The notes under the pieces: generated by a model
What the model was told of the DNA's origin: nothing
Database searches by the model: none
The model's input: only the letters and a program-made list of their open reading frames with translations
Virus record (IMG/VR): IMGVR_UViG_3300036944_001324
Coordinates: 186,001 to 250,000 of that record
Length of the DNA: 64,000 bases
Strand: one strand, 5' to 3'
Translations under genes and position numbers: made by a program
In this document: one piece after another, positions 34,985 to 64,000 of the stretch
Layout: every line of letters begins with the position of its first letter
How positions within the stretch are numbered: the first letter of the stretch is position 1

Positions 34985-35386
34985 ATGTTGATCATTCAAA
35001 ACATCTCGATCAAAGACAAGGTTCTGATCGTCGGTGCCAGCAGCCGTGAGATCATCTCCAGCAAAGCAGACTTTGTCTCTGCTCAGCCAGAACCTATCTT
35101 GGTTTTGCAACTTGACTTCGGTAACGGTGACCCACTGACGTCAATGGGCATCACCAAGGAGTTGGTGGAAAAGCTTGATACTCCTTGCCAGGTATTTCTG
35201 GGCATCGCGCAGAACACGTGGAGTGATCTGCCGGTCACCATCAATGAGTTGAACGTAATGATCAGCGAACTTGTCGTTAACGACGACAAAGTGGTTTTCA
35301 ATAAGTACACTGGTATTCTGGCGGAAGCCAATCCATTCCACAAGTACCGTGTTGCTACGCCTGAATTCATTTCTGAACCAAATTAG
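34985..35386 (+). CDS. hypothetical protein
   Basis: AAGGA RBS. Confidence 0.7.
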   Translation: MLIIQNISIKDKVLIVGASSREIISSKADFVSAQPEPILVLQLDFGNGDPLTSMGITKELVEKLDTPCQVFLGIAQNTWSDLPVTINELNVMISELVVNDDKVVFNKYTGILAEANPFHKYRVATPEFISEPN

Positions 35387-35394
35387 GAGTAGTC

Positions 35395-35619
35395 ATGGAA
35401 GCGTTTGTTTTGGTCTGGATGATTGCGGTTGGTAACTCAACGAACACCAACACCTACAAGGTGGACTCAGGCACTGCCCCCTTCCCATCCGAGGTAGCTT
35501 GCCTGACAGCCCAAAAGAACATACTGACTGACATGGATAAATACAACAAAATGACTGAACGCAAATTCAGTATCCACGTCATTTCCATGGACTGTTACGG
35601 AAATAAGAGGACCAAGTAA
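35395..35619 (+). CDS. small exported protein with a Cys pair
   Basis: AGGAG RBS; hydrophobic N-terminus; C..A and C-terminal C. Confidence 0.65.
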   Translation: MEAFVLVWMIAVGNSTNTNTYKVDSGTAPFPSEVACLTAQKNILTDMDKYNKMTERKFSIHVISMDCYGNKRTK

Positions 35620-36002
35620 TGAGCACGCAAAATTCTGTCACTTTGTCTGCTGAAGAAGCCAGGGTTGTCTTTGTGCAACACGTAGCTGGTGTTGTCGAAT
35701 ACTGGGAAAACGAAAAGGGTTCACTCACCAACCGTGAAAGACTCGAAGGTGTAGCATTCAGTATTCTCACTGCCTTGGATGGTAGTGGATTAACGATGCC
35801 GCCTTTTACCGTACGACCCATTCCTGACGAAAAAGGCGGTTTTGATTTCTTTGGAACTGTCTGGCCGGATAAAGACCTCGGTGGAGGTCTGCACGATATC
35901 TTTGATCGGGAGCTTAAAAAGAAACCGGAAGAAAGAACCGAGCTGCAGGGTGTTCTGAAAAGATTCCGGGCCGAGATGGATAACTTTCGCGAAACGCTGT
36001 AA
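35619..36002 (+). CDS. hypothetical protein
   Basis: TAATG coupling; YW ... RLEG.AFSIL.ALDG motif common in phage proteins. Confidence 0.7.
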   Translation: MSTQNSVTLSAEEARVVFVQHVAGVVEYWENEKGSLTNRERLEGVAFSILTALDGSGLTMPPFTVRPIPDEKGGFDFFGTVWPDKDLGGGLHDIFDRELKKKPEERTELQGVLKRFRAEMDNFRETL

Positions 36003-36017
36003 CTAGGAAAAGTCAAA

Positions 36018-36500
36018 ATGAACATAGCCAAACTGCACCGCGTCTACCCTCTGACGAACGTTTTTATCAACGACGGTTGTCTTACGCTGGAGTCAACCTA
36101 TCGGATGCGTTTCAATCGTACTTCGGGAAGTCTGGATCTTCCCGATTACGACGTAACACCGTCCACAAAACAGTTGCGTCTGAACCTGGAGCCCATCGGT
36201 GACAACGAAGTACTGGTTGTTGTTGACACCTCTAACAGACAGCTGGCGGGTATTGAGGGTTTCTACGGGTTTTGCTTTTCGGTTGATCTTTCTGCAATCA
36301 CTGAAGAACAATGCAAAATCTTGTTCAGTATCTCTCATGGCGGGAAATACCCCTCAGTTCTTGCAAAGTTCGGATACAAAAGTGTCCAACTGGTCGTGCA
36401 CGAAATCCATGAAAAGGATTCTGGTGTTGATTACAACAGCCGGATCTGCACAATCAGCAACAACGCATATATCGCATTCATAGGTGCTTCAAATGGCTGA
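36018..36500 (+). CDS. hypothetical protein
   Basis: AGGA RBS. Confidence 0.7.
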   Translation: MNIAKLHRVYPLTNVFINDGCLTLESTYRMRFNRTSGSLDLPDYDVTPSTKQLRLNLEPIGDNEVLVVVDTSNRQLAGIEGFYGFCFSVDLSAITEEQCKILFSISHGGKYPSVLAKFGYKSVQLVVHEIHEKDSGVDYNSRICTISNNAYIAFIGASNG

Positions 36501-36714
36501 AAAGAATAAGGCTGATATGCCGCAAATTCAACCAGTCGAACGCAATGAATTGCTCGAAGCTCTTAGCGAGATGGTTCGCAAGGGTGAGCCGGTTAATATT
36601 CACGAGGCCATTGCAGTGGCTGAATACCAATCACGGTTTCAGCAAGCACGTGAAGCCAAGAAGACCCAGACCCTCTGGGGTCGTTTCTTGGCGTTCTTCA
36701 ATCACCAGAAATAA
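36493..36714 (+). CDS. hypothetical protein
   Basis: Overlapping start. Confidence 0.6.
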   Translation: MAEKNKADMPQIQPVERNELLEALSEMVRKGEPVNIHEAIAVAEYQSRFQQAREAKKTQTLWGRFLAFFNHQK

Positions 36715-53710: not shown

Positions 53711-53753
53711 AGCATAAGAAGCCCAGGCTTTGCGGCCTGGGCTCTATGCCGTC
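53711..53753 (+). terminator. CATAA/TATGCCG-flanked hairpin
   Basis: agcccaggc/gcctgggct stem; no U-tract. Confidence 0.55.
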
Positions 53754-55983: not shown

Positions 55984-56057
55984 CATTCATTCATCATAAA
56001 AGGCAAGGGTTCATTCCCTTGCCTTATGTCGTTTAATCTACCATCGAAAGAATTACC

Positions 56058-56921
56058 ATGTCCACGTTACACGCCGAAATGAGTTACGCACTCACAACAG
56101 CTTCAGTAGCTCTTGATGATTTTACCGGTGCCGGAGGTAATTATCAAAACTACATATCGGCTCTTAAAGAAGTAGAGCGTCTGATTCGGCTTGAGATGCA
56201 AACATCAAGGTTTATTTCAGAAAACGCTACTCTGAAAAATACAGAATCTCTTTGTAGTGAGTTGGAACTCACTACAGAACAAAAGGGGATTTTGTGGACA
56301 GCCATGAAATCCAATTACGTTCAATTGGAAAAGGATGGTGTCTTTTGGAACATCGACGGTGTTGATGTTGTTATGGGAACGTTGACGCTGACACCTTTGT
56401 ACGGCGTCGGTGGCGATGTGGTGAAACCATTCACGTTCAGTGTTGCGAGCATGAGCGTTCCAAACATGACTTTCTGCGCCATTGTTAAGTTTGAAGTGGG
56501 TGGAACTCCCAACGGACTGATACACCTGGTAGATCGGCTCGAGATGCTTGATAACAATCTGAAGAAGATCTACGAGCACGCGCGCGTTGTGCAAAACGAC
56601 CCCGTCAATACGGAAGTCTGTGAACTTTTCAAAGAAACTCTTGCGGCTATTCCTCGTGTGTTGACCGGGCCGACTGACGGTACCAACCACGCCATTCGTA
56701 TCTGGTACAACGAGCAAGGTTGGAACGATAATTTCGTCATGCAACTTTTTAACTATTGCGGGAAATGCAGTGGCTGGAGCAGCATGATTGAAGATCACAT
56801 GCGGGGAGGGCGTGTTTACAACATGGCAGAATTGTGTCGTCAAGAGCTCCGGCAAATCCTGAGCATGATGAAAGAACGAGTTGAACAACTGGCAAAGGAA
56901 CACAACCATGACCACCTCTGA
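56058..56921 (+). CDS. hypothetical protein with the shared W.xI..VD beta module
   Basis: SNYVQL...FWNIDGVD....LTL.P. Confidence 0.7.
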   Translation: MSTLHAEMSYALTTASVALDDFTGAGGNYQNYISALKEVERLIRLEMQTSRFISENATLKNTESLCSELELTTEQKGILWTAMKSNYVQLEKDGVFWNIDGVDVVMGTLTLTPLYGVGGDVVKPFTFSVASMSVPNMTFCAIVKFEVGGTPNGLIHLVDRLEMLDNNLKKIYEHARVVQNDPVNTEVCELFKETLAAIPRVLTGPTDGTNHAIRIWYNEQGWNDNFVMQLFNYCGKCSGWSSMIEDHMRGGRVYNMAELCRQELRQILSMMKERVEQLAKEHNHDHL

Positions 56922-57351
56922 AACCAAACAAAACCCGATCACCACTCTGGCCGCAGCCTGCACTGCATTCAAAAATGCAGTTCTTACATATGACCTCTCT
57001 ATGGTAGACGGCGGTAACGTCCAAGGTGCCATCAGTGGCGTTATTGGACATGCTGAGAATGTTCGTCATGCTGCTGATACTCTTTGCGCTGAATTCGAGC
57101 GTAATGACAATCCGACGACAGATGACGTCTTTCAGGCAGCCAACAATGCTGCGTTCATTCGTACCAAAGACGGTGAACCTTGGTTGCGCATTGACGCCGT
57201 TGACGGTGGTGTGGATGGTGATGTGGTGTATCCACTCACCATCTTGGCCCACGATGAGAACACCGAAGCAGGAGGTGCGCAGCGCTTGTTGATCGACGAG
57301 ATCGATCCCAAGGCGGTGAGCTTCCAGCGCCTCGTGGAATTCAAACTCTAA
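56908..57351 (+). CDS. hypothetical protein with the shared beta module
   Basis: AAFIRT...PWLRIDAVD...LTILAHD. Confidence 0.7.
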   Translation: MTTSETKQNPITTLAAACTAFKNAVLTYDLSMVDGGNVQGAISGVIGHAENVRHAADTLCAEFERNDNPTTDDVFQAANNAAFIRTKDGEPWLRIDAVDGGVDGDVVYPLTILAHDENTEAGGAQRLLIDEIDPKAVSFQRLVEFKL

Positions 57352-57366
57352 CAACTGGGTAAAACA

Positions 57367-57768
57367 ATGAGTGAACAAACAGCGCAAATGAGAGCTTTTA
57401 GTGAGCTTCTGCCGGTTGTGAATGAAACGATAGAACAGTTTCGCTACCGCGGTGTGATTGCACCCAAATACAAGGTTGTTATTAACGACCTTATTGTCTT
57501 CATGGAAGCAGCAGTTGTCCTGGATGAAACTGGGCTCGGGCTGAACACCCATGCAAGCTCTAAACGTTTCACAGAACTGGGACTGAAAGAGTCATTCTTG
57601 CGGTTCTACTGGGAGGCATTGCAGTTCTTCACCAACTGGAAGTACTCTCGCGAGCGCGGTGTGTTGGTGACTGAAGAAGAAACTGAATCGCAAATGCGAC
57701 TGGCTTTCGTCTACCTGAACCACATCGTCAGTGTGTTGGGTGAAATCCCATCTATCCGTCCTGCTTAA
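57367..57768 (+). CDS. hypothetical protein
   Basis: Packed ORF. Confidence 0.7.
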   Translation: MSEQTAQMRAFSELLPVVNETIEQFRYRGVIAPKYKVVINDLIVFMEAAVVLDETGLGLNTHASSKRFTELGLKESFLRFYWEALQFFTNWKYSRERGVLVTEEETESQMRLAFVYLNHIVSVLGEIPSIRPA

Positions 57769-57846
57769 AAGCAGAAAATCATTCATCATTACTTACGCAT
57801 GCAATTGTTTCAATTGCATGCGTTTATAATCAACGTAAAGAAAATC

Positions 57847-58500
57847 ATGGCACAAATTCGCATGTCTCCTGAAAATGTTAAACGTGTTCTAGCTACGGCC
57901 AAACTCGCCACGCATTGCCGATTGAGTAATGACCCGATGTGGTACAAAATCGTTTCTGTGGATGACAAAGTTCACGGTGACATCCATCTGGCTCATCCTC
58001 TTGATCCCTCCAACCAAGCCACAAACATAATTTACGTGAAGATGAACACAGACCCGTCTCAGATCCTCTTTTGCAACATTGCAGAAGTTCCTCTGGTTGG
58101 TCCAGCACTTACACCAGCGCAAGAGCTTTTCCAAAAGCTCTTCGATCTCAAACAAGAGATGTTGGGAATTACCAAAAGCATTTCATCCATTAAACACCTC
58201 GACAAAGAGTCTTACAAAGAGTGCCTTTTTGGGATGTACCAGGCGTTGGCTGTGCCAACTAAGCGGATTGGTGTTACCGATAACAAGGCAGCCTACGACT
58301 GGTTTGTTTCTCAGGGTTGTTCTCTAACCACCACCGCTGTGGCCATTGCTTTGTGTGATGAAATCTATTCACACTGGCGAGCCATGGTTACAAAGACAAT
58401 GCTATTCCAAGTAAAACAATCTGGTTACGACGATTGGGAACGTCGATTCAAGCTGATAGACCTCATTATGGAAGATCTGAATAAGCCTCACACAGCATAA
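57847..58500 (+). CDS. hypothetical protein, tandem paralog of 58555..59208
   Basis: SP..VKRVLATAK.ATHC...W.KIVSVD...W..RFKLIDLIMEDL.K shared over the full length. Confidence 0.8.
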   Translation: MAQIRMSPENVKRVLATAKLATHCRLSNDPMWYKIVSVDDKVHGDIHLAHPLDPSNQATNIIYVKMNTDPSQILFCNIAEVPLVGPALTPAQELFQKLFDLKQEMLGITKSISSIKHLDKESYKECLFGMYQALAVPTKRIGVTDNKAAYDWFVSQGCSLTTTAVAIALCDEIYSHWRAMVTKTMLFQVKQSGYDDWERRFKLIDLIMEDLNKPHTA

Positions 58501-58554
58501 GAGCAGAGGGCGCAACGCCCTCTGCTTTACTGCGCAACTTATCCAAATAAAGTC

Positions 58555-59208
58555 ATGAATCAAACTGCCATCTCCCCCAAAGACGTAAAGCGTGTGCTGG
58601 CTACTGCTAAAGTAGCGACCCATTGCAAACCGGCCAACACTACTGTCTGGAACAAGATCGTTAGTGTTGATGAAGAGGACTACTTCATCTACCTTGCTGA
58701 CCCACTCGATCGGTCGAATCAAATCACTTCGTCTATTGAAGTGCGTTTGTTGTATGGTCCAGACCAGTTGGTGTTTGCAAACATTCAAGAAGTTGAATTA
58801 GTGACCCCGGACACCAAGCCCGGCGAAGTGTTGCTTTTTCAATTGCATGAAATCAAACGTGATATGAGCGCCATCATTACCAACGTGACTCGTTTCGATA
58901 AAGTGAAGCGCAAAGATTACCACGAATGTATTGATCGCTTGTACTACGCGTTGATGTCGACGGTAAAGGTCGGTGTTTTTGAGAAAGAGACTTACAGCTG
59001 GTTTCGAAGTCAGCGTTGCTCTTTCACGACTGCAAGTCTGGCTGTCTTGCTTTATAAAGAGACGAACACTCACCGAAATACGCTCTATAACAAGAACGTG
59101 AGCAATTACTCACTGCAGGAAGGGTTCAGCAACTGGGGCCGCTGGTTCAAGTTGATCGACCTAATCATGGAAGACTTGAAAAAGGCTTTCCCACTCACAC
59201 AACTGTAA
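58555..59208 (+). CDS. hypothetical protein, tandem paralog of 57847..58500
   Basis: Same shared motifs as 57847..58500. Confidence 0.8.
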   Translation: MNQTAISPKDVKRVLATAKVATHCKPANTTVWNKIVSVDEEDYFIYLADPLDRSNQITSSIEVRLLYGPDQLVFANIQEVELVTPDTKPGEVLLFQLHEIKRDMSAIITNVTRFDKVKRKDYHECIDRLYYALMSTVKVGVFEKETYSWFRSQRCSFTTASLAVLLYKETNTHRNTLYNKNVSNYSLQEGFSNWGRWFKLIDLIMEDLKKAFPLTQL

Positions 59209-59269
59209 GCATAAAAGCAAGGGGCGTAAAGCTCCTTGCTATGCCGTTAATCCATCGAAAGACTGTCAA

Positions 59270-59818
59270 ATGAAAATACCTGGACTCAAACACTACCAGT
59301 TCGACCCTGAGGTCGTCTGTGCGTATTACTTCTCGGCAGCCGCTCACGCTTCCGTCAAGCAAAAGCGCAACTACACAGGCGAGCCTTACATCGTCCATCC
59401 AGCCGGCGTGCTGGAGATACTGATGCAGGCATGCCCTGACAAGGTCACTAACGCGGTCGCTAAGGCCGCTTTGTTGCACGATACAACAGAAGATACCGGG
59501 GTGACTCCTGAATTGATTCTGCAGCTGTTTGGTCAACAGGTGCATGGTTTCGTGAAGTACCTGAGCAAGGCTACTACTTCCAGCTTCGGCAATCGTGCCG
59601 AACGCCAAGCTGTTGAAGTGGCACGTATGCATAAGGCGCCTGAAGAAGTGCAGAACGTCAAAGCCTCTGACCTCATCCACAACCGCCGCAGTATTGCGCT
59701 GCATGATCCAGGCTTCTTGCAAGTGTTCGACTACGAAGCTCACCAGTTGTTTGCTGCTATGCAGTTGGTGGATCGACGCTTGGTTGCACTGTGGGAGAAG
59801 GAAACATCCACCGAATAA
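59270..59818 (+). CDS. HD-domain small alarmone hydrolase-like protein (RelA/SpoT/Mesh1 family)
   Basis: AH..Q.R.YTGEPYI.HP, AALLHDT.EDT, VK.SD..HN. Confidence 0.88.
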   Translation: MKIPGLKHYQFDPEVVCAYYFSAAAHASVKQKRNYTGEPYIVHPAGVLEILMQACPDKVTNAVAKAALLHDTTEDTGVTPELILQLFGQQVHGFVKYLSKATTSSFGNRAERQAVEVARMHKAPEEVQNVKASDLIHNRRSIALHDPGFLQVFDYEAHQLFAAMQLVDRRLVALWEKETSTE

Positions 59819-59833
59819 CGGAGATACAAAACA

Positions 59834-60574
59834 ATGACTCATTCCCTCAAAGTACGTTGGGCTATTGCTGCGGCTATCGCTAAGGCGACTCACATTCGCA
59901 TAGACGACCAAAAGGAGTTGCGCATTACAAGCAACAGTTCCGACGGCACGAGCGTTACTGTCCAAGACCCCAATTACCCGGACAAGATCATCAAGATCGA
60001 TCTGGATAATCGCAGTCTTGACAGTCTGAAGTTCTGGACTATGACTCCTGTCGTCATTCCTAATAACGAGCCGCTGGTGGCCTACTACGAGCTCCTATGT
60101 TTTAATCTGGCCGTCGGGTTCTCCGACAAGCAAGGTATCGTGGAGCTTAAGGAATCTGTGTTTCAGGTTTGGGAAGACGACATCGAACTGCGCGGCATGC
60201 CCAAGAACGGTGCCAAGATACAGATGGCTTATCACGGCTTACCAGACAGTGTCTACTCCGCCAGCCACCAGATGCGCGACATCTTGGATGATCCCAACTT
60301 CTTGAAGCACAACCAAGCCTACGTGCTGACCATCTGCGTGTTCACAGTAGCCCGTGCATTGCGTGAGCTGCTGCGTAACAAGGGCTTTAATCTTTCCAAC
60401 CTCCATCCCGAGATGCCGCTCATCCTGGACATCCCCGCCGATTGGGAAGCCTGTCGCATCCACAACCTGTGGTGTGGGATCTCTGGTGCTGAGGAGAAAG
60501 TGGTCGAACGTGGTCAACTGTTCGAATCCAAAATGGAAAAAGTCGTGGAGGGGGTTGGGGGGAGGACTCTCTAA
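59834..60574 (+). CDS. hypothetical protein; N-terminus related to the 57847/58555 module
   Basis: AKATHIRI...RI......V.V.DP. Confidence 0.65.
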   Translation: MTHSLKVRWAIAAAIAKATHIRIDDQKELRITSNSSDGTSVTVQDPNYPDKIIKIDLDNRSLDSLKFWTMTPVVIPNNEPLVAYYELLCFNLAVGFSDKQGIVELKESVFQVWEDDIELRGMPKNGAKIQMAYHGLPDSVYSASHQMRDILDDPNFLKHNQAYVLTICVFTVARALRELLRNKGFNLSNLHPEMPLILDIPADWEACRIHNLWCGISGAEEKVVERGQLFESKMEKVVEGVGGRTL

Positions 60575-61328
60575 CGCTTCGCTAGTAACTGTCGCTTTTA
60601 CGTTACCACGTAAAAGCTCTTTCAATCTCTTAGATTTCTAATTGAGTTATGAACGTTAGTTCATGATTCTCTTAGGAACTTTGAGGTATCTACTCAGGGG
60701 TTCCTATACCCCTGAGAGTTCGTATAAGGCCTTATAAAGCCGACATAAAAGCAGGAGGGTACACTGACCCTCCTGCTGTAGGTAATAACGCCTTATACGA
60801 GCTTTACAGTAGAGACTCGTAGACGAAGTCTACAGTCTCATATCCAGCATGGACAAAAATGTCCATGCTCTCTTTATATCTTATGCGCAAGTCGTCGAGC
60901 TTTTTCGGCGACTGAGAGAGTACACGGAACATGGACAGCCCGCAGGGATGGACAGTGGAGAGTACGAACGAAGGAGCATACCAGGGAGAGAGCGTAAGCG
61001 ATCACACTGAGATACTTCGCCGGGTAGCTACGTATCTCAGATAAGGGGCGTTAGCCCCTTTTTTATTCTTATTCTTATTCTCCATATGATTGTTTACTTA
61101 GTAAACCTAATTAGACATTCGGTGGAGAATAATATCTATCCAGCGTTGGAGAGCTTATAAACGCTGTTACAATGACCCTTGTTTACAAGAGAATGACTAT
61201 TGGATCGACATTAAGTCGACAGATCGAGCAGGTGTGCTACGTTACACCTGCGCTGTAACCCTAGCCTAAGAGCTTGGAGAGCAGTAGATCAAAAAAGTTC
61301 TTATGTTCAACAAACGAGAGAGTCAAAC
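60575..61328. other. ORF-free, hairpin-dense non-coding region (structured RNA or DNA cis-element)
   Basis: At least 12 inverted repeats of 5-14 bp in about 750 bp, with a terminator-like hairpin plus T-tract at 61043-61064. Confidence 0.7.
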
Positions 61329-62003
61329 ATGACAAACAACCAACACGCCAACGCTGAGAAGATTGAAGTTCAAATTCAAGGTATTTATTTCATAGCGGGC
61401 TTGATCAAAGATCAGTGCCAGAAGCTGTACATGCAAGACCCTCAGGTGTTCTTGGATGACATGCCCACTACGTTCAGCGTATTGGATCTCCTGCAGACCG
61501 CTATGGATTCAGTGAGTAACAACCTGGATAGGTACTTCGGTCCTTATGCGGCGTTTAACGAGCCTCAGCTGACTGATATCGTTTTGGAAACAACTGAAGC
61601 GGTTAACCGCTGCCGCGCTGCGTTCATTGTGGACGAATACCCTGTGGACATGCTGGAGTACCGTGAAACGATGTTGTACAAGCTGCCGCACGTGTACGCT
61701 GGTTTGATAGGGTATGCTGAGCAGCTCAAGTACATGCTCGAAGCTGGTAAGGATCGGGGTCGTATTAGTCCTCGCAGTGTTTCTCGTGTAGTGTTCGATT
61801 TTTATCTGGATGCTATCTTCGAGAAGATCAAGACCAACACCCATGTGTTCATGCATGGTCGTTGGTGGAAGATTGAGAAGTGCGAGATCGATCCTACCGA
61901 TCGTAGCTTGTTTGAGTTGCATCTGGACTTCGATCCTTTGAAGAAGGTTGTGAGTTCTGCTCATAGCTTGCCTTTGATCTATAAGGCTGCTTTCAAGCGT
62001 TAA
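61329..62003 (+). CDS. hypothetical protein with a C-terminal shared beta module
   Basis: NTHVF..GRWWKIEKCE...LHL.FDP. Confidence 0.7.
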   Translation: MTNNQHANAEKIEVQIQGIYFIAGLIKDQCQKLYMQDPQVFLDDMPTTFSVLDLLQTAMDSVSNNLDRYFGPYAAFNEPQLTDIVLETTEAVNRCRAAFIVDEYPVDMLEYRETMLYKLPHVYAGLIGYAEQLKYMLEAGKDRGRISPRSVSRVVFDFYLDAIFEKIKTNTHVFMHGRWWKIEKCEIDPTDRSLFELHLDFDPLKKVVSSAHSLPLIYKAAFKR

Positions 62004-62009
62004 ACTGGT

Positions 62010-62050
62010 AGCCCTAGGGAGTTGGCGCTCCCTAGGGCTTTTATGCCGTC
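62010..62050 (+). terminator. hairpin followed by TTATGCCG
   Basis: agccctagggag/ctccctagggct stem. Confidence 0.75.
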
Positions 62051-62122
62051 TACGGGGCTTTTAGAGGCCTTGTAGGTATGTATGTGAGTGTTATTTTTAA
62101 ATTGTAAAAAGGAAATGAAATC

Positions 62123-63334
62123 ATGAGCGCACATATGCAAATCGCTGAACTTCATATGCTGGGTCTTTACCTGAAGGTAGTGCGAGACCGGATTGATGCT
62201 TCTGCGTCTTCAGATCAACTCTTCCATCCTAAAGCGGAGCTGTATATCCGTAACACGATGATCTTGCTTCACGAGGTTGGTTACAAGAGACTGTTTGACT
62301 GGATGAACGACGACGATAAACAGATCGTTGTTCAAACAGCAAAAGAGTTGGAGTTGTGGTTCGATCCATCAACGGATAAGAAACTCAGGCACGTTTGGTT
62401 CAAACTCACGATGACTGCATGCTTGACTTACATAAAGGACAAAATCGAGACTTACCTGGAAGATCTGATACGTTCAACTGTGTTCTTCGGTAATCGACAC
62501 GTTGCTGAAGAAGCACAAGAAGTGAAAGAACCTTCTATCGAAGAAAAGGTAGCTGAGTTCCTCGAACAAGCTCAGGACCACAAGTACCTTGTTCTGAAAC
62601 ACAACAACTCCACACAGGTCTATGAAATCGACCATGTGTGTAGAACCATGGACGGCGGCCAACCCAGTGTTATAGCTGTGCGTAGTGTTGAAAGTGATGG
62701 GAAAACAGCTAACGCAATTACTTTCTTTATAGCGGCTGTGTTGCTTGGCTCTTATGAGATCAGCTTTTTGGACTCACTACCGTCAGGCAAGATCGATGGT
62801 GAAGCATTGAGCAAATCAATCACTTCACTGGGTAAAACGTGGGATGATGCAAAAACGACATCTTTCATGGAGGAACTCAAACACGCCATGTACGTTGAGA
62901 TGCCGAGTTCGGACGGGCTTCGTTTGGTCTGGAAGAAAATACGCCAAATTGAAGGTATTGAGAAAGGCGTTCGTGCGACTGTTATTCACCTGTCGTCATT
63001 TGACCCGTTGGATACACACGTGGATGCTTATCCACTGATTAGTCTTCCTGTTCCAAAGCTGCGGTTAAAAAGGCACGCACCTGTTGACGAAGACATTCTC
63101 AAAAAGTGGAGTGAGTTTATTGGCGACATTACACGAACCAGCGATAACAACGCGTTGGTGAGCGTGTACAAACCTACCGCTCAGCGCTTTCTGCATATAG
63201 TGGATGTATCGCATCCTGACGCGGTAAACGAGCGTTCTCTTGGAATACTTGATCCAATCACCAAAACATCACTTGTGTGTAGTTTGTCTGATCTCATCTT
63301 GTCTGGGTGGGTCTTACCAGTGGAGCCCAAGTAA
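62123..63334 (+). CDS. hypothetical protein with about 3 tandem copies of the shared beta module
   Basis: VYEIDHV / VWKKIRQIE...IHL..FDP / FLHIVDVS...LGILDP. Confidence 0.7.
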   Translation: MSAHMQIAELHMLGLYLKVVRDRIDASASSDQLFHPKAELYIRNTMILLHEVGYKRLFDWMNDDDKQIVVQTAKELELWFDPSTDKKLRHVWFKLTMTACLTYIKDKIETYLEDLIRSTVFFGNRHVAEEAQEVKEPSIEEKVAEFLEQAQDHKYLVLKHNNSTQVYEIDHVCRTMDGGQPSVIAVRSVESDGKTANAITFFIAAVLLGSYEISFLDSLPSGKIDGEALSKSITSLGKTWDDAKTTSFMEELKHAMYVEMPSSDGLRLVWKKIRQIEGIEKGVRATVIHLSSFDPLDTHVDAYPLISLPVPKLRLKRHAPVDEDILKKWSEFIGDITRTSDNNALVSVYKPTAQRFLHIVDVSHPDAVNERSLGILDPITKTSLVCSLSDLILSGWVLPVEPK

Positions 63335-63441: not shown

Positions 63442-64000
63442 ATGGAAAACATCAACTTCCCCGCTCTTCGTTCTTTTCTGCTAGCTCTCATCGAGTTGAC
63501 GTTTTTGCCTTCCAAACGTACAGACTTGATTTTTGAAGCACGCCGGATGCGTGAAATGCTCGGTGACATGATCAACAAGCTGACGCCACAACCCACACAA
63601 CAAGAGCTGGACAAACGCATCGATGCATTGCGTAAAGTCGCTAAAGACTCATCGCATTACAGTACCGACGGAAACCTGGTACTGAAAATCATGTTGGTCA
63701 CCGAAACCGGCATTACGGTGCGTGCTAACCCAGTTAGCACAGAACAGACCATCGACTACAAAGACATGGACATCGCAACTACCAAGTTCTACAAGACCAA
63801 CATGGTGGAAGTAACGTTCAACGACATGACCATCCAACCTAACCAGGAAGGTCCTTCAGCGATTGATCAATTGCGCGGACTTGCTGAAACGCAGTTCGAT
63901 CCTGTCCAAGCCAGGAAAGTTGAGTTGCCTCAGGCATGCGAACTTCTCACAGACAAAAAGCTAGCCATGCTCGACCAGTTGTCTGCTACCGTGTCGGACT
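63442..64000 (+). CDS. hypothetical protein, 3'-partial
   Basis: ATG 63442 with AAGGA RBS (MENINFPALR...); the frame stays open to the window end, so it is absent from the ORF track. Confidence 0.75.
   Translation, partial: MENINFPALRSFLLALIELTFLPSKRTDLIFEARRMREMLGDMINKLTPQPTQQELDKRIDALRKVAKDSSHYSTDGNLVLKIMLVTETGITVRANPVSTEQTIDYKDMDIATTKFYKTNMVEVTFNDMTIQPNQEGPSAIDQLRGLAETQFDPVQARKVELPQACELLTDKKLAMLDQLSATVSD

Follow-up and report, generated by a model that had tools for sequence, protein, structure and literature searches.

A shared small-barrel module in neighbouring orphan genes of an uncultured phiKZ-like jumbo phage

Can a run of adjacent phage genes without known relatives be traced to one common domain, and what might such a domain do for its carriers? 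This question is raised by a locus in the 64,000-nt window analysed here, which comprises bases 186001-250000 of the 271,654-bp virus record IMGVR_UViG_3300036944_001324 (CheckV completeness 99%). An original prediction had placed a beta-rich module of about 65 residues in seven neighbouring genes starting at 56058, 56908, 57847, 58555, 59834, 61329, and 62123, each time fused to a different helical partner, and had interpreted it as a targeting tag on early effectors. The genes were found at these coordinates on the plus strand, on which every gene between 56058 and 64401 lies; they are designated P0001 to P0010 below (Table 1; all translations use genetic code 11). Our analysis reveals that the shared module is real, that it spans about 78 residues rather than 65, with one helix and five strands, and that it defines a well-supported new orphan domain family of generic fold, which is however smaller and less freely shuffled than had been proposed.

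Homology and fold of the module

As anticipated, P0004 and P0005 are full-length tandem paralogs (44% identity, expectation value (E) 8e-58), and a word search retrieved four relatives of P0004 with 54-94% identity. The check put forward with the original prediction fails in its literal form: a hidden Markov model (HMM) built from the N-termini of P0004 and P0005 recovered no other gene of the genome at E below 1 (E 1.5 to 7.8 for the proposed copies), and homologues from related contigs were needed to link them. The family alignments used homologues from the contigs of relatives (loci L001-L006, L017-L019, L030, and L031). A module-only HMM, iterated at an inclusion E of 1e-3 over 2,021 targets, about 1,940 of which were six-frame open reading frames (ORFs) of the genome (mostly non-genes, which serve as decoys), recruited six P0004-like subfamilies, followed by the P0002 family through its C-terminal 77 residues. 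This family entered first via a relative at E 3.9e-5, the rest following at 1e-11 to 1e-21, and no decoy ORF was recruited at this threshold. Comparison of the P0004/P0005 family with the P0002 family by hhalign gave P 1.3e-4 over 69 columns, in agreement with the C-terminal copy foreseen in P0002. In alignment A2 (23 sequences), W32, F75, and L83 are invariant, A18 and V38 are near-invariant, and a T-H-x-R motif (T22, H23, and R25) is conserved. Judged from these alignments, P0002, P0004, and P0005 are certain carriers of the module.

The internal copy proposed for P0001 is likewise strongly supported. P0001 was the top sub-threshold match of the iterated HMM (E about 0.01), and its score of 16.4 bits was reached by 0 of 2000 shuffles, the highest of which gave 7.3. 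By hhalign, it matched the module at P 4e-4 over 70 columns, the P0004/P0005 family at P 5e-4, and the P0002 family at P 1.4e-4; as the alignment with the P0004/P0005 family spans 164 columns, P0001 carries the helical domain of these proteins as well as the barrel. In addition, a stricter, home-made test with a position-specific scoring matrix (PSSM) was applied, in which the alignment is glocal, so that it is global for the family profile but local for the sequence; 3,000 shuffles and 5,748 real 95-aa windows of all other genome proteins served as nulls. P0001 scored 60.4 in this test, compared with a null maximum of 31.7 for the windows. Relaxing the HMM inclusion to E 0.05 added the P0001 family only, and P0007, P0008, and P0009 were not recruited.

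How widely is this family distributed? A profile search of 1.84 billion protein representatives returned eight clusters only, all from related phage contigs. INPHARED phages gave no match by megablast and tblastn, and scans of IMG/VR and JGI metagenomes with P0006 or alignment A1 (the P0004 family alignment) as queries gave no relatives. The family is confined to one phage lineage, which agrees with the lineage-specific character suggested earlier. Scans of the ten proteins P0001-P0010 against Pfam and PHROGs assigned a family to P0006 only; the module family, the barrel, and the domain arrangements are new to Pfam, PHROGs, and the structure libraries searched. As a type, such families are already known: large viruses have multigene families in variable regions that are specific to one lineage.

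The fold was modelled with AlphaFold2 for full-length P0004 (alignment A1) and for the module alone (alignment A2). The P0004 model has a mean predicted local distance difference test score (pLDDT) of 86.5 and comprises, according to DSSP, a helix (residues 8-20), five strands (23-26, 33-39, 45-49, 60-63, and 73-76), and a helical bundle (90-211). The module-alone model (pLDDT 85.4, predicted template modelling score (pTM) 0.73) has an identical secondary structure, and both models contain an N-terminal alpha helix and a five-stranded, strongly bent antiparallel sheet, which is the Sm/LSm-like arrangement. Searches with the module model found nothing significant in the PDB with Foldseek (best E 0.28) or in BFVD (best E 0.09); the Atlas fold search returned unnamed clusters only (TM score at most 0.58), and an ESM-Atlas feature search of the module was uninformative (best score 0.81). 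With an exhaustive structural aligner, the best match was the translocation-signal domain of TraI (Z 5.7), and the others included the Sm-like protein XC5848 (2e12; Z 5.4, root-mean-square deviation (rmsd) 3.0 A, 70 residues), the Pelota N-domain (Z 4.3-5.2), the WYL domains of PafBC, DriD, CapW, and BrxR (only Z 3.7-5.1), the KOW domains of Spt5 and NusG (only Z 3.6-4.4), and Hfq (Z 3.6), with Tudor also among the weak neighbours; all of these scores lie within the chance range of the tool. The LSM/Hfq (Sm1/Sm2), KOW/SH3, and WYL profiles of Pfam matched none of the ten proteins at E <=1. By its predicted topology, the module belongs to the generic Sm/SH3-like small barrels, so that the SH3/KOW-like barrel proposed earlier stands as a fold class, but not as membership in a KOW, SH3, or any other family.

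Extent of the family

The remaining genes of the array gave more graded results. In P0007, for which a divergent N-terminal copy had been proposed, aa 3-75 scored 13.0 bits with the HMM (0 of 2000 shuffles) and 37.7 with the PSSM, above 5,748 of 5,748 null windows, which is weaker support than for P0001. Its hhalign match (P 8e-4) extends over only 27 columns, a Leu residue replaces the invariant Trp of the family, and its HMMER E is only 0.05-0.3, on par with one decoy ORF at 0.13. About three copies had been placed in P0009, whose best segment in fact lies at another site (aa 61-136; PSSM 39.7, again above 5,748 of 5,748 null windows). Two of the proposed places, aa 135-220 and 232-318, are marginal (PSSM 21.1 at aa 130-225 and 30.5 at aa 238-321), and the third, aa 316-403, is devoid of module signal (PSSM -1.6 at aa 312-403). 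No internal repeat was detected in P0009 by hhalign or by Smith-Waterman self-comparison. An ortholog of P0009 gave PSSM peaks of 44.5 and 26.2, where P0009 itself gives 39.7 and 30.5.

P0010 was absent from the original list of carriers, yet its aa 72-151 are module-like (PSSM 35.4, above 5,748 of 5,748 null windows; 1 of 3000 shuffles reaches this score). The C-terminal copy assigned to P0008, on the other hand, could not be substantiated: its PSSM score of 20.8 ranks 20th among 254 proteins, its HMM score of 4.0 bits was matched by 13 of 2000 shuffles, and the inclusion of a 50%-identical ortholog did not raise the module match (hhalign P 0.03). The Smith-Waterman z for P0008 against P0004 is 4.2.

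Taken over the whole genome, the seven best PSSM scores among 254 proteins belong to the contiguous genes of 56058-64401 minus P0003, P0006, and P0008. Because these seven proteins are contiguous, chance is very unlikely, and hhalign against every gene of the genome gave the same order. We accordingly grade P0007, P0010, and one segment of P0009 as probable carriers from these profile comparisons, and P0008 and the remaining segments of P0009 as unproven. The family announced in seven genes is real, but its number was overstated relative to the statistics.

A more sparing explanation would restrict the family to four tandem paralogs (P0001, P0002, P0004, and P0005) and would ascribe the likeness of P0007, P0008, P0009, and P0010 to chance, or to a helix-then-strand pattern that is common to neighbouring genes with similar composition. 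It would account for the HMMER values of P0007 given above, for the absence of P0008 and P0009 from the HMM match lists, for pairwise Smith-Waterman z values of about 0 for P0007, the P0009 segments, and P0010, and for the alignment of P0009 aa 61-136, whose second half is gappy and helical-looking. However, PSSM ranks 4-7 of 254 all fall among the seven neighbouring genes, all lie above the 5,748 null windows, and all pass composition-preserving shuffles at <=1/3000, while hhalign places the same genes directly after the family. We consider this four-gene explanation improbable.

Gene layout, intergenic signals, and turnover

The genome that carries the array encodes an RNA polymerase beta subunit, which is a full-length match to phrog_3148 (phage multisubunit RNA polymerase), a terminase, a phiKZ-type internal head protein (genome gene 34986-36701, PF12699 at 5.7e-8), a PhuZ tubulin (E 1e-23), and a distant homologue of the chimallin gp54 of phiKZ, recognised in two segments of a 689-aa frame (E about 1e-6). 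Since the polymerase subunit, the internal head protein, PhuZ, and the chimallin homologue are present, the phage is, by its gene content, a nucleus-forming, phiKZ-like jumbo phage (an uncultured chimallivirus), as the earlier mention of a phage nucleus had implied. Its closest cultured relatives, Ralstonia phage RP12 and Burkholderia phage FLC9, share only about 40% identity in the RNA polymerase beta subunit. The metagenomes in which the locus was found come from 11 studies and represent shale-gas, aquifer, groundwater, freshwater, and wastewater sources.

Table 1. Genes, module segments, and intergenic elements of the locus (window coordinates, nt)
Feature	Position	Strand	Length	Description
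P0001	56058..56921	+	287 aa	Module-like barrel aa 71-147 (nt 56268-56498) between an N-terminal extension and a homologue of the P0004/P0005 helical domain
P0002	56908..57351	+	147 aa	Helical N-terminal half; C-terminal module aa 71-147 (nt 57118-57348)
P0003	57367..57768	+	133 aa	Without module (no HMM or PSSM signal); used as negative control
P0004	57847..58500	+	217 aa	N-terminal module aa 6-83 (nt 57862-58095); C-terminal helical bundle aa 90-211
P0005	58555..59208	+	217 aa	Tandem paralog of P0004; module aa 6-82 (nt 58570-58800)
P0006	59270..59818	+	182 aa	RelA/SpoT-type HD phosphohydrolase (HD_4); without module
P0007	59834..60574	+	246 aa	Probable divergent N-terminal module aa 3-75 (nt 59840-60058)
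Gene-free gap	60575-61328		754 bp	
P0008	61329..62003	+	224 aa	Claimed C-terminal copy aa ~146-216 (nt 61764-61976) not established
P0009	62123..63334	+	403 aa	Module-like at aa 61-136 (nt 62303-62530; best segment) and marginally at aa 238-321 (nt 62834-63085); no signal at aa 316-403
P0010	63367..64401 (window ends 64000)	+	344 aa	Module-like segment aa 72-151 (nt 63580-63819)
GC-rich hairpin, then TTATGTCG	56000..56033	+		Upstream of P0001
Like hairpin-TATG element	~59216-59248			Before P0006
Like hairpin-TATG element	~62010-62050			Before P0009
Like hairpin-TATG element	~53720-53753			
Like hairpin-TATG element	60741-60777	-		
Hairpin + TTTATG(C/T)CG(T) sites in window	1999, 4718, 10647, 16389, 16403, 18394, 27832, 30180, 31719, 33519, 34918, 40536, 47483, 56024, 60741, 62041			

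The start of P0010 is uncertain, as the corresponding gene of relative L006 begins 25 codons downstream of the matching ORF start, which is equivalent to an in-frame ATG at 63442 (MENINF...).

The module occupies different positions in its carriers: N-terminal in P0004, P0005, and probably P0007, internal in P0001 and probably in P0009 and P0010, and C-terminal in P0002. The view that every copy has a partner of its own holds for part of the array only, inasmuch as one helical domain is common to P0001, P0004, and P0005, whereas the helical domains of the other genes differ. Between paralog pairs, identity amounts to 35% in the module versus 26% in the helical domain, and the conserved positions of the latter in alignment A1 are only T162, F201, L206, L211, and K213. 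When the full-length P0004 model was used for a fold search, generic helical bundles dominated the matches. HepT/HEPN toxins were among the top matches of the P0004/P0005 helical domain (Z 9.4-9.5, where helical bundles need a Z of about 13 for a meaningful match), and a HEPN identity was rejected, as alignment A1 contains no conserved R-x(4-6)-H motif.

P0006, which lies inside the array, matches Pfam PF13328 (HD_4) at 3.8e-12 and a PHROG phosphohydrolase at 3.9e-26, and it may be an alarmone or nucleotide-signal hydrolase by these matches. The gene is retained in most relatives.

Upstream of P0001, P0006, and P0009 lies in each case a GC-rich hairpin with (T)TATG(C/T)CG immediately after it. 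The window contains 16 copies of TTATGYCG, where 2.7 would be expected; the hairpin-TTTATG(C/T)CG(T) sites are found on both strands, in most cases 30-190 nt ahead of a gene, and about 50 strong hairpin-linked copies are present genome-wide, likewise on both strands. TATG, with its G as the transcription start, is the late-promoter consensus of phiKZ and is read by the non-virion polymerase (PMC4666361). By this resemblance, the hairpin-TATG unit is probably a terminator combined with a phage-polymerase promoter, and because its core is the phiKZ late-promoter consensus, the analogy argues weakly against the "early" expression assumed for these genes. A PHROG scan of the genes downstream of the strongest hairpin-TATG sites, made to infer timing, was uninformative.

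The gap between P0007 and P0008 is conserved far above the proteins on either side. This holds even for the distant relative L001, with a mean column identity of 79% and long blocks without any change. The 53-aa ORF of the gap (60849-61010) is interrupted by a stop in L001, so that the element is non-coding. Hairpins within the gap are conserved, an intrinsic terminator at 61043-61066 shows a compensatory change in its stem, and the folding z-scores are -5.9 and -9.7; an Rfam scan of 60400-61400 gave no match. These features mark the gap as a candidate structured RNA or regulatory hub.

Gene content around the array varies among relatives. The close relatives L002, L004, and L030 have the gene order of the window. 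P0003 to P0006 are missing from L006, in which an extra 469-aa gene is present. The number of P0004-like paralogs, which form six subfamilies, ranges from 0 to at least 3, with three in L005, three at new positions in L017, and at least three in L018. In the 258-kb relative L001, blastp places the homologue of P0002 in a 287-aa protein (L001:8421-9284), of which it makes up the C-terminal half (aa 149-287), and aa 71-154 of this protein match the gene upstream of the P0002 homologue in L019; by these matches, the protein represents a gene fusion or fission within the family. At the position of P0009, several relatives carry genes for 410-483 aa without detectable similarity to P0009 (L001:12208-13659, L006:4106-5515, and L017:4878-6107); the product of L001:12208-13659 has a module-like segment at aa ~226-320 (PSSM 39.2; hhalign to the P0002 family P 1e-3).

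Contigs of four metagenomes, compared with the window, show strain variants. One joint, from 62068 to 63272, omits the whole of P0009, and some strains are without this gene. Other contigs break at 57837 and at 62100/62101, just upstream of the start codons of P0004 and P0009, and a back-joint from 58511 to 57837 connects the end of one P0004-like gene with the beginning of a second, as tandem copies of such a gene would do. The strain breakpoints coincide with gene boundaries or are close to them, and those at 57837, 62068, and 62100 adjoin hairpin-TATG elements, although they are few and come from contigs only.

Predicted pairing, possible roles, and known systems

What the barrel does was approached by complex prediction. 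The P0004 module with the P0005 module gave an ipSAE of 0.72, compared with 0.00 for the best of 3 controls, a result in favour of pairing between modules. Among solved complexes, 58 of 80 attain this mark, as do 2 of 110 mismatched pairs, and it is a test that close cousins of the true partner can also pass. The runs showed a contact agreement of >=97% and a partner pLDDT of >=85. The predicted assembly, of which only two chains were modelled, is a two-fold dimer via the last strand; its interface is symmetric, consists of the helix (residues 9-21), the W32 loop, and the last strand with its tail (74-86), paired antiparallel, and contains all three invariant residues W32, F75, and L83. A shared targeting tag on early effectors would be supposition, this predicted module-module dimer being the sole functional hint.

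The explanation that we favour, with moderate confidence, is a lineage-restricted, fast-evolving accessory gene family in which the barrel serves as a common self-association or anchor domain while the helical domains diversify. The barrel would be the constant part, whose last strand and helix bring about self-pairing or pairing between paralogs, and the helical domains would be the diversifying part that bears the function. The locus evolves as genes are duplicated in tandem, lost, fused or split, and, it would seem, as cassettes are replaced at the intergenic hairpin-TATG signals, a turnover pattern that would be expected for host-interaction genes acting in takeover or counter-defence.

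Several points weigh against this explanation. The dimer is a model only, predicted from our own alignments, which were the same for both chains, and the pairing signal may stem from a homodimer, or from covariation inside one chain that was taken for covariation between the two. Taken together, the interface positions show no higher conservation than the other positions (Mann-Whitney p 0.51). The predicted interface does not include the conserved T-H-x-R motif, which suggests a second function, perhaps in ligand or partner binding. Besides, P0007, P0009, and P0010 were assigned to the family by the home-made glocal PSSM and by rank arguments, with HMMER E values of >=0.05, in the case of P0007 level with one decoy ORF.

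An alternative that we regard as unlikely, and that follows the original prediction, is that the barrel acts as a shared address tag for one third-party factor, such as the nucleus import machinery, a capsid-packaging partner, or a host protein, and thereby brings different effector domains to one and the same place. Such a tag would fit a conserved module with varying partner domains, the polar T-H-x-R patch outside the predicted dimer interface, and a phage that has chimallin and PhuZ. The best structural match, albeit weak, is the TraI translocation-signal domain (Z 5.4-5.7), and the phiKZ inner-body proteins provide a precedent for a shared domain on co-packaged paralogs (10.1101/2024.03.24.586471). 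However, a Z of 5.7 is within the range of chance small-barrel matches, the array proteins have no PF12699 match, placement at the N-terminus, the interior, and the C-terminus would be unusual for a processed packaging signal, and the upstream signals resemble late rather than early promoters.

Somewhat less probable still is a further explanation, in which the barrel would be a pairing code that yields homo- and heterodimers, and hence combinatorial two-headed proteins, and/or the T-H-x-R face would be an address for the nucleus-import or packaging machinery. If either were true, a folded-domain tag would sort proteins in a nucleus-forming phage; to our knowledge, no cargo signal has been defined so far for such phages. 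The weakest alternative, which we deem very unlikely, is an Sm/WYL-like ligand sensor or sponge (for RNA, single-stranded DNA, or a nucleotide signal) that works with the HD hydrolase against host signalling or defence: it would fit the helix and five-strand Sm topology, the weak matches to Sm-like, Pelota, and WYL domains (Z 3.7-5.4), the conserved T-H-x-R and Trp, and the HD_4 gene inside the array, but the structural scores and the lack of LSM or WYL matches reported above speak against it.

With the grouping made here, about seven neighbouring orphans fall into one domain family and become a single testable problem, in a type of phage that carries hundreds of genes without known relatives. 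If the barrel is a dimerisation or address domain, it would offer a handle on how nucleus-forming phages organise or sort their accessory proteins, and would moreover exemplify how domains are shuffled and genes turned over inside a single lineage of phages.

How does this locus compare with known systems? The commonest structural neighbours of the module are Sm/LSm-like and SH3-like barrels (2e12, Pelota/Dom34, WYL, KOW, Tudor, and Hfq; Z 3.6-5.4), from which it differs in having no Sm1/Sm2, WYL, or KOW motifs and in being predicted as a two-fold dimer instead of a ring. The top match, the translocation-signal domain of TraI (TSA; 4l0j and 9f0x; 73-74 residues), is a folded recognition-signal domain; the resemblance has an rmsd of 4.4-4.9 A, 11-12% identity, and a chance-range score, and the module has no link to conjugation.

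The intergenic signals are reminiscent of the PeSL cassettes of T4-type phages, in which variable genes of unknown function are likewise flanked by a repeated stem-loop and a promoter-like motif and which mediate gene shuffling (PMC2839356, PMC4122927). At this locus, a few strain breakpoints, known from contigs only, lie beside the hairpin-TATG elements, at which recombination may occur. The motif is a different one, a GC hairpin with TTTATG(C/T)CG whose core equals the phiKZ late TATG promoter, and the phage family differs as well. For the array as a whole, the nearest parallel is found in the inner-body paralogs of phiKZ (gp92-gp97, gp162, and gp163; PF12699, phiKZ_IP; 10.1101/2024.03.24.586471). 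Unlike these, P0001-P0010 show no PF12699 match at E <=1, and it is another gene of the genome that matches; the shared domain is a barrel of 78 aa, compared with about 390 positions for the IP domain. In both phages, nevertheless, adjacent paralogs have one domain in common and differ in the rest.

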